Sequence record: ON631220.1
Reading direction: 5' to 3' (one strand)
Length of the DNA: 64,000 nt
Shown: positions 22,249 through 62,523 of the stretch, one piece after another
Position numbering within the stretch: the stretch's first letter is position 1
How the letters are laid out: each line of letters opens with the position of its first letter
Program-made: the position numbers and the translations under genes
The notes under the pieces: model-generated
Databases searched by the model: none
What the model was told of the DNA's origin: nothing
What the model saw: the letters and a program-made list of their open reading frames with translations, nothing else

Positions 22249-22274
22249 TAAAAAATAATTAAGATATATATTAC
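22249..22274 (+). promoter_or_regulatory. phiKZ-type early promoter
   Basis: A-tract plus TTAAGATA-TATATTAC upstream of 22309. Confidence 0.75.
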
Positions 22275-22764: not shown

Positions 22765-22790
22765 TAAAAAAAGTTTAAGATCTATATTAC
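22765..22790 (+). promoter_or_regulatory. phiKZ-type early promoter
   Basis: TAAAAAAAGTTTAAGATC-TATATTAC. Confidence 0.8.
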
Positions 22791-38771: not shown

Positions 38772-47547
<8,776 letters not shown>

Positions 47548-47605
47548 ATACTTGGAATAGTTATTTATTGTAACCATTCTTAAACCAATGTAATAGGTAA
47601 TTAAC

Positions 47606-47911
47606 ATGTCTCTACTTAAAAAGATCGGTCTAGCTTTAATTGGATCAGAAGGACGTAAGGAAGTTTTTGAACAAGAATTAACTAAACTATCAAATTCTAA
47701 TGCAGTTATTGATCAAATGGTGATTAATTTACTGGGTAGTAAGAAGAAGTTAGATGACTTCCTAATTAAAGCTGAAGAAATTGATAATAAGAAACTAGGC
47801 TTCATTAAAAATCGAGCCGAACTTATTAAACTAGTCAAATCTAAATATTCACAAGACCCTCGGGTTGCCGATGTAGTAGTGTCACTTTACATTGGTGGTT
47901 TCATTTATTGA
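47606..47911 (+). CDS. Hypothetical basic helical protein
   Basis: 101 aa ORF. Confidence 0.7.
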   Translation: MSLLKKIGLALIGSEGRKEVFEQELTKLSNSNAVIDQMVINLLGSKKKLDDFLIKAEEIDNKKLGFIKNRAELIKLVKSKYSQDPRVADVVVSLYIGGFIY

Positions 47912-47918
47912 GGTAAGT

Positions 47919-48611
47919 ATGTCTAAACCTAATCTTGAGTGGTTAGCTTCCTTAGAAAGTAAAGAAGCTAAAAGTACAGTAGATTCTTCCGATATGGATA
48001 ATGATCAAAAGGAAGGTAGCGATAAGTCTCAACAAGATGAAGCTACTGAACCTGAGAAGAAAATTACTGCAACTGATGTACAAATTGCAATTGAAGAATA
48101 TGCGCGTATCCGTGCATTAACCACTACTAAAGATCTTCCAACTGACCCTGAACCAGGTGATACTTATCATGTAAATGGGGTAGATTGGATTTATCAAGAA
48201 GATGGTGGATGGGTAACTATGCAAGGTATTTATGGCCATGAACATTTTGATGAAAATGGTCTAAATATTGAAGCAAGTGGTATTGATCAGAAATCAGGTG
48301 CAACTAAACGTTATGTGGTAACTGGTTATAATGCTCAGACTAACCCAGCTGCTATGCCTGGTGATAATCTGACTGAATGTGTTATCCTAATGCAGAATGG
48401 ACTTGTTCCAGAAGTTGGTGTAAATGGCCTAACTGCTGACTGTCTACTTAAAATCGTTAAAGATTTATTTGAAGGTTATCAAGCAGGCCCATTTGCATGT
48501 GAAGAGAATCAGGTAGTGATTAATTCAATGGACCGTGCTCTTAGTGCAATTCATCAACGCCTCGTAAGACGTAAAGAACAAGGTACTGAAGGTACCTATA
48601 GTGGTAATTGA
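47919..48611 (+). CDS. tad1: Tad1-like cyclic-nucleotide/gcADPR sponge domain fused to an acidic N-terminal extension
   Basis: C-terminal ~110 aa (QNG..PE.GVNG...LLKIVKD.FEGYQAGPFACEEN...ALSAIHQRLVRRKEQGTEGT) aligns by eye with the Tad1 pattern LLEIVRDRL.SFQAGPF.SREN...AL..M..R...R.ER.V.GT; GAGG RBS before MSKPNL. Confidence 0.75.
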   Translation: MSKPNLEWLASLESKEAKSTVDSSDMDNDQKEGSDKSQQDEATEPEKKITATDVQIAIEEYARIRALTTTKDLPTDPEPGDTYHVNGVDWIYQEDGGWVTMQGIYGHEHFDENGLNIEASGIDQKSGATKRYVVTGYNAQTNPAAMPGDNLTECVILMQNGLVPEVGVNGLTADCLLKIVKDLFEGYQAGPFACEENQVVINSMDRALSAIHQRLVRRKEQGTEGTYSGN

Positions 48612-48618
48612 CATAAAT

Positions 48619-48645
48619 GCCTCCCTTCGGGGAGGCTTTATTTCG
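48619..48645 (+). terminator. Terminator
   Basis: GCCTCCC-TTCG-GGGAGGC-TTTATTT. Confidence 0.85.
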
Positions 48646-48647
48646 TA

Positions 48648-48674
48648 TTAAAAAAAATTTGAGATTTATATTAC
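48648..48674 (+). promoter_or_regulatory. phiKZ-type early promoter
   Basis: TTAAAAAAAATTTGAGATT-TATATTAC. Confidence 0.75.
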
Positions 48675-48719
48675 TAGTGTGTAATTAGGAAACCATCTAT
48701 CTAGTAAAGAGGAATCACA

Positions 48720-49274
48720 ATGAGCGTTGTAATTTTCACTGCCAGACCTATTGGTTATAAAGTTCCTGGCGCTAATTCCACTGTAAATAAGTTTGCACTA
48801 AATACAGCTAATGCACCTAGTGTATATAGTTCTTCACCAGGATCACCAATTACTGCTCAGGAGAGTAGTTGTATCTATACACTCACTTCAAATCATGAGT
48901 TAATCGCTGGGGACACCGATAAAGATAACTCCCTAATGAGTTTCAAACTAGTGCTTGCGTATAATAACGATACAGCTAATTATCTAATTAGTACGCAGGT
49001 TATTGATAGTATCGATAAACTAAAAGGAGTGGAAATTATTAGTGAACTCAGTTTCAGTGTAATTGATACTGGTGCACATATGATCCGTAGAGTGAATTCG
49101 ATCGGTGTATGTGAGGCTGTTGCCGCTCGATGGTCTCCAGTTGCAATTGAACACGTGGCTAAAGCAACCGAGCGTGAGCACCCTGGTACTCCCATCGGTG
49201 ATGCTCGTGAGATGATCGACTCTGGTGAAGACCTGGGTGACGTATGTACTTCATATATCAAATCGAGTAACTAG
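48720..49274 (+). CDS. Early hypothetical protein
   Basis: 184 aa with GAGGA RBS. Confidence 0.75.
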   Translation: MSVVIFTARPIGYKVPGANSTVNKFALNTANAPSVYSSSPGSPITAQESSCIYTLTSNHELIAGDTDKDNSLMSFKLVLAYNNDTANYLISTQVIDSIDKLKGVEIISELSFSVIDTGAHMIRRVNSIGVCEAVAARWSPVAIEHVAKATEREHPGTPIGDAREMIDSGEDLGDVCTSYIKSSN

Positions 49275-49275
49275 C

Positions 49276-49518
49276 ATGGTAGATAAAGACAAAACAATGG
49301 TAGATTTGATTAAGTCAGCGCAAGAACTGACTTCACATCTTGGCCCACTGAATAAAGTATTAACTACCATTAATCTAATTGGTATGCCAGATGCTTTAAA
49401 AGAAGTAGTTAAACTCCCCGATGTAAAATGTGTTGTATATAAACGACCATTAACTGATAATCTAATTAAGGTTGTCTTTAATGATGGTAGTTGCTTTGTG
49501 ATAAAAGATGTAAATTAA
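49276..49518 (+). CDS. Hypothetical protein (likely start MVDKDK)
   Basis: ATG 1 nt after the previous stop. Confidence 0.65.
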   Translation: MVDKDKTMVDLIKSAQELTSHLGPLNKVLTTINLIGMPDALKEVVKLPDVKCVVYKRPLTDNLIKVVFNDGSCFVIKDVN

Positions 49519-55794: not shown

Positions 55795-55805
55795 AGTTAT
55801 ATATT

Positions 55806-55832
55806 ACCCTCTCCTTCGGGAGAGGGTTTATG
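55806..55832 (+). terminator. Terminator
   Basis: ACCCTCTCC-TTCG-GGAGAGGGT-TTAT. Confidence 0.8.
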
Positions 55833-62499: not shown

Positions 62500-62523
62500 A
62501 AATTAATTTAAATCTATATTACA
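62500..62523 (+). promoter_or_regulatory. phiKZ-type early promoter
   Basis: TAAATTAATTTAAATC-TATATTAC upstream of 62569. Confidence 0.65.

Follow-up and report, generated by a model that had tools for sequence, protein, structure and literature searches.

The 64,000-nucleotide stretch of sequence record ON631220.1 analysed here, referred to below as the window, comes from phiKZ or a near-identical Phikzvirus; bases 47000-49500 share 100% identity with Pseudomonas phage OMKO1 and 99.9% with phiKZ (NC_004629 197550-200050). The open reading frame at 47919-48611 on the + strand is PHIKZ184 of NC_004629, which carries the RefSeq label "structural protein". Its product, gp184, is 100% identical to chain I ("gp184") of PDB entry 8Y6V, the cryo-EM structure of the phiKZ capsid, and is covered over its full length by phrog_22140. 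The gene has a ribosome-binding site, GAGG, at 47910-47913, and the ATG at 47919 lies five bases past a GAGGT box, which shares bases with the stop codon of gp183. The features of the locus are as follows.

45553-47547, + strand: gp182, baseplate spacer protein; opens the unit, behind a terminator at 45505-45532
47606-47911, + strand: gp183, 101 aa, between gp182 and gp184; no family match except phrog_27341
47919-48611, + strand: PHIKZ184 (gp184, phiKZ Tad1), 230 aa plus stop, identified from the open reading frame, the ribosome-binding site, the NC_004629 CDS, and 8y6v_I
47919-48095, + strand: acidic disordered segment and putative propeptide, residues 1-59, with S/A/G-x-E motifs ending at E13, E16, E44, and E59
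48096-48242, + strand: β-hairpin "wedge" insert, residues 60-108, ending at GHE108, with strands at 82-85, 88-92, and 98-100 in the model
48243-48608, + strand: Tad1-fold sponge domain, residues 109-230, with pocket residues Y187, N197, R214, and R218
48619-48646, + strand: intrinsic terminator closing the gp182-gp183-gp184 unit, with a 7-bp GC stem, a 4-nt loop, and a T-rich tail
48662-48674, + strand: AT-rich promoter-like motif upstream of gp185, a recurrent intergenic motif

The initial annotation had placed the gene downstream of the tail genes, and we find it in a late tail-operon position behind the baseplate gene gp182, whose product has a baseplate spacer role (PMC13250141). The lack of an obvious hairpin after 47547 also holds: the + strand from 45532 to 48619 lacks any terminator-like site, and gp182, gp183, and gp184 therefore look like a single late unit. 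Pfam and NCBIfam scans of gp182 and gp183 gave nothing significant. At the position of gp183, both PhiPA3 and 201phi2-1 carry two small genes unrelated to it.

The terminator predicted at the end of the gene was recovered as a hairpin at 48619-48636 with a T-rich tail reaching 48646 (MFE -18.8 kcal/mol, z = -4.7), and this tail matches the published phiKZ terminator motif. The early promoter suggested just past it coincides with a recurrent AT-rich element. Using the letters of the window at 48662-48674 as the search pattern, we obtained 8 matches with at most one mismatch in the window, compared with 1.27 expected; exact copies, all intergenic and on the + strand, lie at 22262-22274, 22778-22790, and 48662-48674. 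The motif fits what has been published on early promoters of phiKZ and probably represents the early-promoter element of this phage. It is preceded by an A-run, and its one-mismatch copies include those at 62510-62522 and 55795-55807.

The C terminus of gp184 had been read as a Tad1 pattern, and every motif position of that pattern is present (Q159, G161, L176-L177, Y187-F192, E196-N197, R214, R218, and G225-T226); across 90 relatives, these positions are invariant or nearly so. The proposed exchange of the last arginine of the pattern for glutamine is also real, with Q221 occupying the column of CbTad1 R116, which is an arginine in 62 of 63 standalone homologues. When searched against the PDB with phmmer, residues 117-226 align to six Tad1 chains of CbTad1 and CmTad1 (E 2e-6 to 4e-6), including 8kbb, 8kbh, 8kbg, 7uav, and 8kbe, and a profile built from 20 homologues matches the PDB Tad1 chains at E 3.7e-12 to 6.8e-11. 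The C-terminal half also falls into phrog_2428, a 131-residue family (E 3e-18). Pfam and NCBIfam scans of gp184 and of both halves returned nothing significant; the PF24729 model ("Acb2_Tad1_hairpin"), for which a gp184 homologue has a weak precomputed match, is too weak for gp184. The last 120 aa, used in a word-indexed protein search, recovered the same jumbo clade only.

The fold supports this assignment. An AlphaFold model of residues 111-230, computed from an alignment of 51 standalone relatives (pLDDT 95.7, pTM 0.83), consists of three strands and two long helices. Foldseek matched this model to CbTad1 and CmTad1 with TM 0.70-0.76 and a probability of 1.00; the top 20 PDB matches were all Tad1, and the next match, a non-Tad1 protein, had an E of 0.05. 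The structural comparison suggested earlier as a check on the Tad1 assignment has thus come out in its favor. Our full-length AF2 model (20 sequences) reached a pLDDT of 55.8 and a TM of only 0.40-0.44 to Tad1, and it is superseded by the domain model. In outline, it contains a disordered region (residues 1-69, pLDDT below 50), which is followed by short hairpins (82-100) and, further on, by a sheet with two helices.

The N-terminal extension was described as acidic with SLE, ATE, and AIE motifs, and this is what we observed: residues 1-116 contain 26 D/E versus 10 K/R, and the three motifs lie at residues 11-13, 42-44, and 57-59, accompanied by SKE (14-16) and GHE (106-108). The number of these S/A/G-x-E motifs is not beyond chance (5 versus 2.5 ± 1.4 in shuffles, fraction 0.08). 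Their positions show conservation in an otherwise poorly conserved region, as a motif ends within three alignment columns of E59 in 20 of 20 jumbo-type homologues, of E13 in 18 of 20, and of E108 in 15 of 20. Because S/A/G-x-E also occurs inside the folded domain (E195 and E224), the motif alone is no proof of cleavage. The extension had further been likened to the internal head proteins encoded in this stretch. With residues 1-116 as the phmmer query, none of the 88 window ORFs that encode 80 aa or more showed similarity, and the likeness therefore holds for composition and motifs but not for sequence.

Part of the extension is peculiar to phiKZ and its closest relatives. Among 20 aligned sequences, a segment of ~50 aa (approximately residues 66-116) is present only in gp184 and its 4 closest homologues. 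In 201phi2-1 gp280 (199 aa), PhiPA3 gp217 (189 aa), and metagenomic homologues, the equivalent of E59 almost directly adjoins the Tad1 domain. The modelled chain of gp184 in the capsid (8y6v_I) comprises 34 residues. It matches our full-length model (100% identity, TMt 0.82, rmsd 2.0; Foldseek) and is missing from the Foldseek matches of the 111-230 model; the capsid-bound piece therefore lies within residues 1-110. Judging from the model, it most plausibly corresponds to the wedge hairpins around residues 70-105. According to the structural report, the modelled part of gp184 is β-rich, occupies a gap beneath hexamer 1, and has fewer residues than the product of gp175 cleavage (Yang 2024, PMC11297242). 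When residues 60-116 were compared with the PDB, we retrieved the protein itself, plus chance matches at E above 2 that we dismissed. The view of the extension as a propeptide stands in part: gp184 is reported to be cleaved by gp175, but not all of the extension is discarded, as a β segment of 34 residues remains structured on the inner face of each vertex-binding complex of the capsid. In a 300-aa jumbo-type homologue (P0020), a different insert of ~100 aa, helix-forming in appearance, occupies the place of the phiKZ β wedge, making the linker that joins the E59-type site to the Tad1 domain a hot spot of lineage-specific insertion.

The presence of gp184 in the virion and its transfer into the host have been described in the literature. 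gp184 is a minor capsid protein in the solved phiKZ capsid, where it is reported to be cleaved by the gp175 protease and is resolved in ~55-60 copies per capsid, in five complexes per vertex (Yang 2024, PMC11297242). It was also found as an inner-body interactor, and injection of a plasmid-expressed, C-terminally 3xFLAG-tagged gp184 into translation-blocked cells was seen by Western blot (n = 1; Fossati 2023, PMC10449902). Another study named the protein Tad1, with "N-termini wedged, C-termini liberated and injected", and found the gene dispensable by TnSeq and its competitive index close to neutral (Chan 2025). A 2026 review lists phiKZ Tad1 as an injected blocker of Thoeris and CBASS, AntiDefenseFinder detects gp184, and the 201phi2-1 homologue gp280, whose locus is syntenic with that of gp184, has been detected in virions. 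These reports bear out the virion-delivered factor put forward in the initial annotation: chain I of 8Y6V is gp184, and both its cleavage by gp175 and its injection are published. As a new candidate it does not stand, the same view of gp184 having appeared in Yang 2024, Fossati 2023, and Chan 2025. An injected Tad1 sponge in phiKZ is thus correct but already known. The additions made here are the mapping of pocket and cA3 residues, the conserved positions of the protease sites, the wedge, and other Tad1 fusions of jumbo phages.

At E ≤1e-3, the 20-homologue profile retrieved 4,410 representative proteins. Contigs of at least 266 kb encode the fused form (189-231 aa) and contigs of 4-105 kb the standalone form (~110-160 aa), with a few exceptions at both sizes. 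The fused form shows synteny, in the order tape-measure/lysin, gp182, small genes, Tad1, and thymidylate kinase. A standalone 134-aa Tad1-like ORF, not the fused form, is found at 3920-4324 of L016, a 268.7-kb IMG/VR contig. PhiPA3-type genomes (PhiPA3 NC_028999, HPP-Temi, phiLBG22, and BRkr) contain two separate Tad1-like places per record; the PhiPA3 place syntenic with gp184 is gp217.

Tad1 domains are also joined to other N-terminal partners. Seven of 59 long Tad1-domain representatives combine an N-terminal fragment of a phiKZ-type major capsid protein (MCP) with a C-terminal Tad1 domain; the fragment spans positions about 143-270 of PF25620 and 223-354 of phrog_3231. The fusions P0047, P0080, P0094, P0101, and P0113 measure 346-591 aa and have intact pocket residues, and an MCP-Tad1 relative is encoded at L086:8001-9131 on a 253.7-kb IMG/VR viral contig. 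Fusion to an MCP fragment may represent a second way of tying the sponge to the jumbo-phage capsid. The MCP-like genes that adjoin the Tad1 gene in 201phi2-1-type loci were considered and set aside, as they have no Tad1 domain inside. A cyclophilin-type peptidyl-prolyl isomerase (PF00160, E 2e-44) precedes a C-terminal Tad1-like domain in gp131 of the Burkholderia jumbo phage FLC9 (L087:2404-3420, an annotated 338-aa CDS in a 322-kb genome) and on two IMG/VR contigs (L010:3227-4327 and L011:396-1496).

In CbTad1, the pocket for gcADPR and cyclic dinucleotides is lined by F82, N92, R109, and R113 (Li et al. 2023 preprint). Our HMMER alignment to CbTad1 assigns Y187, N197, R214, and R218 of gp184 to this pocket, with all four residues retained. 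All 27 jumbo-type proteins have the asparagine and both arginines (100% conservation), each of these three columns is at least 97% conserved among 63 standalone proteins, and the aromatic column holds F or Y in 90 of 90. Passages in secondary sources that cite Li et al. (2024, Nature) state that gp184 binds gcADPR and blocks Thoeris.

Together, these data lead us to conclude, with a probability of roughly 90%, that gp184 represents, in phiKZ, the Tad1 family of sponges for immune signals and that it is made as a head-targeted precursor. The following sequence of events would fit this conclusion. gp184 would share a transcript with gp182 and gp183, two late baseplate genes. Its acidic residues 1-59 would act as a head-targeting propeptide that is cut off after E59, possibly also after E13, and residues 60-108 would anchor the protein beneath hexamer 1. 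Another cleavage, behind GHE108, would release a domain of 122 residues, approximately the size of a standalone Tad1. This domain would exit with the DNA and the inner-body proteins, pair in the cytoplasm with the pocket in the dimer interface, and absorb TIR-made gcADPR and some CBASS dinucleotides before phage gene expression.

A broader reading is that gp184 is a full-spectrum Tad1, which would also sequester cyclic trinucleotides such as cA3 through a hexamer, as CbTad1 and CmTad1 do. It would be in keeping with the 2026 review, in which phiKZ Tad1 blocks CBASS as well as Thoeris, and, speculatively, a charge swap of E195 with R205/R206 could preserve the dimer-dimer contact. The cA3 pocket of CbTad1 includes R90 and T97, which contact the phosphates of cA3, contribute to hexamer formation as well, and abolish binding when mutated (Li et al. 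2023 preprint). These residues correspond to E195 and N202 in gp184, and sequestration of cA3 is therefore not to be assumed. Both are likewise replaced in all 27 jumbo-type relatives, where the R90 column is E in 22, D in 2, and G, K, or P in 1 each, and the T97 column is never T. The hexamer-interface residues R88, T95, K96, Q98, E99, M102, W103, and K106 of CmTad1 align to E195, N202, S203, D205, R206, S209, A210, and Q213, so that none is conserved and the hydrophobic M-W pair becomes S209-A210. On sequence grounds, the canonical cyclic-trinucleotide site is probably missing from gp184. This loss agrees with the observation that tad1-positive phiKZ still triggers cAAA-dependent NucC (type III-C CBASS), which is silenced only when Acb2 is supplied in trans; among 1,500 arrayed phiKZ mutants, nlp1 alone was sensitised to cAAA/NucC CBASS, and no orf184 mutant was (Chan 2025). 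We regard the full-spectrum reading as unlikely. The absorption of Thoeris and CBASS signals claimed in the initial annotation is accordingly favored for gcADPR and dinucleotides, for which the pocket residues are retained, but not for cA3. We also considered whether the loss of the cA3 residues is specific to the fused clade and rejected this idea. In the 63 standalone IMG/VR proteins, the R90 column is R or K in 46 and the T97 column is T in 45; in the 51 standalone representatives nearest gp184, R or K occupies the R90 column in just 6. Many of these nearest relatives also lack the pair, and its absence is therefore a trait of a wider subfamily, not a consequence of fusion.

Two further explanations concern the place and time at which gp184 would act. 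The sponge might work chiefly as a fresh cytoplasmic protein late in infection, with the packaged copies too few to matter. The gene does lie in a late tail operon, injection was seen once and with an over-expressed tagged copy, and the ~55-60 copies resolved per capsid correspond to roughly 0.1 micromolar binding sites per cell by our estimate, so that the injected dose may be small compared with the signal. Yet a block of Thoeris or CBASS signalling is useful only if it comes early. Moreover, conserved protease-site positions and an extension in the head-targeting style occur in every jumbo-phage homologue, whereas the standalone Tad1 proteins of smaller phages have no extension, and the independent fusions of Tad1 to an MCP fragment point toward packaging. 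We consider a predominantly late role improbable. Alternatively, gp184 might be mainly a structural cement of the capsid vertex, its Tad1-like domain being a fold kept by descent that does not serve as a sponge in phiKZ. Several observations speak against this: just 34 residues are ordered, and these lie outside the Tad1 domain; the gene is dispensable, with almost no cost in competition; and Goslar forms the vertex complex without a gp184 homologue. In addition, most homologues do not have the wedge, yet their Tad1 domain and pocket residues are invariant. A purely structural role is, in our view, very hard to sustain.

The injected Tad1 sponge, our preferred reading, may be one case of a wider pattern, although we offer this extension tentatively and with more doubt than confidence. 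Jumbo phages might recurrently deliver Tad1 in their virions through varied N-terminal adaptors, the packaged forms being restricted to gcADPR and dinucleotides, without the cyclic-trinucleotide site and perhaps without the hexamer. The adaptors that we observed are the acidic propeptide with candidate protease sites in phiKZ, PhiPA3, and 201phi2-1, to which phiKZ adds the wedge, and the MCP fragment in uncultured jumbo phages. The reason for such a specialisation may be that individually tethered protomers have to travel through the tail and then come together again at low concentration.

An injected sponge would blunt signal-based immunity (Thoeris and some CBASS) before any phage gene expression, a point already made in the literature, and would complement the vesicle and nucleus that shield phiKZ DNA. 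Our residue-level reading, of modest extra value, separates the signals that the packaged form is predicted to absorb from those that it is not, and the other fusion partners indicate where further packaged anti-defence proteins could be sought, a lead that is likewise modest.

Among known systems, gp184 belongs to the same family as Tad1 (Thoeris anti-defence 1) of Bacillus phage SBSphiJ7, CbTad1 (7UAV/7UAW/8SMD/8KBE-H), and CmTad1 (8KBB-D). It has the same antiparallel sheet with two long helices and shares with them the gcADPR/dinucleotide pocket residues and a glycine-threonine pair near the C-terminal end. In contrast to standalone Tad1 proteins, which have ~120-145 aa and are expressed early, it is a 230-aa precursor with a 108-residue N-terminal extension that is packaged and injected. 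Further differences from CbTad1 and CmTad1 lie in the residues of the cA3 pocket, in those of the hexamer interface, and in the lid arginine, R116, which is replaced by Q221 in gp184. Acb2 and Tad2 are, like gp184, small oligomeric phage sponges for CBASS or Thoeris nucleotide signals, but they represent different families; Pfam PF24729 groups a hairpin element of Acb2 with Tad1.

With respect to its route, gp184 resembles the phiKZ proteins gp93, gp95, and gp97 (and gp94, gp153, gp163, and gp177), which enter the head, are processed by gp175 at S/A/G-x-E, and are injected; an N-terminal piece of gp93, as of gp184, stays woven into the capsid. The gp93/gp95/gp97 group has no sequence similarity to gp184, however, and consists of helix-rich, PF12699-type proteins with no assigned anti-defence function. 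A comparable packaging route is known from IPI* of phage T4, a late anti-defence protein that carries an N-terminal prohead signal, is trimmed by the prohead protease, is injected with the DNA, and acts before gene expression. IPI* has an unrelated fold and, unlike gp184, directly inhibits a restriction nuclease without sequestering a small molecule.
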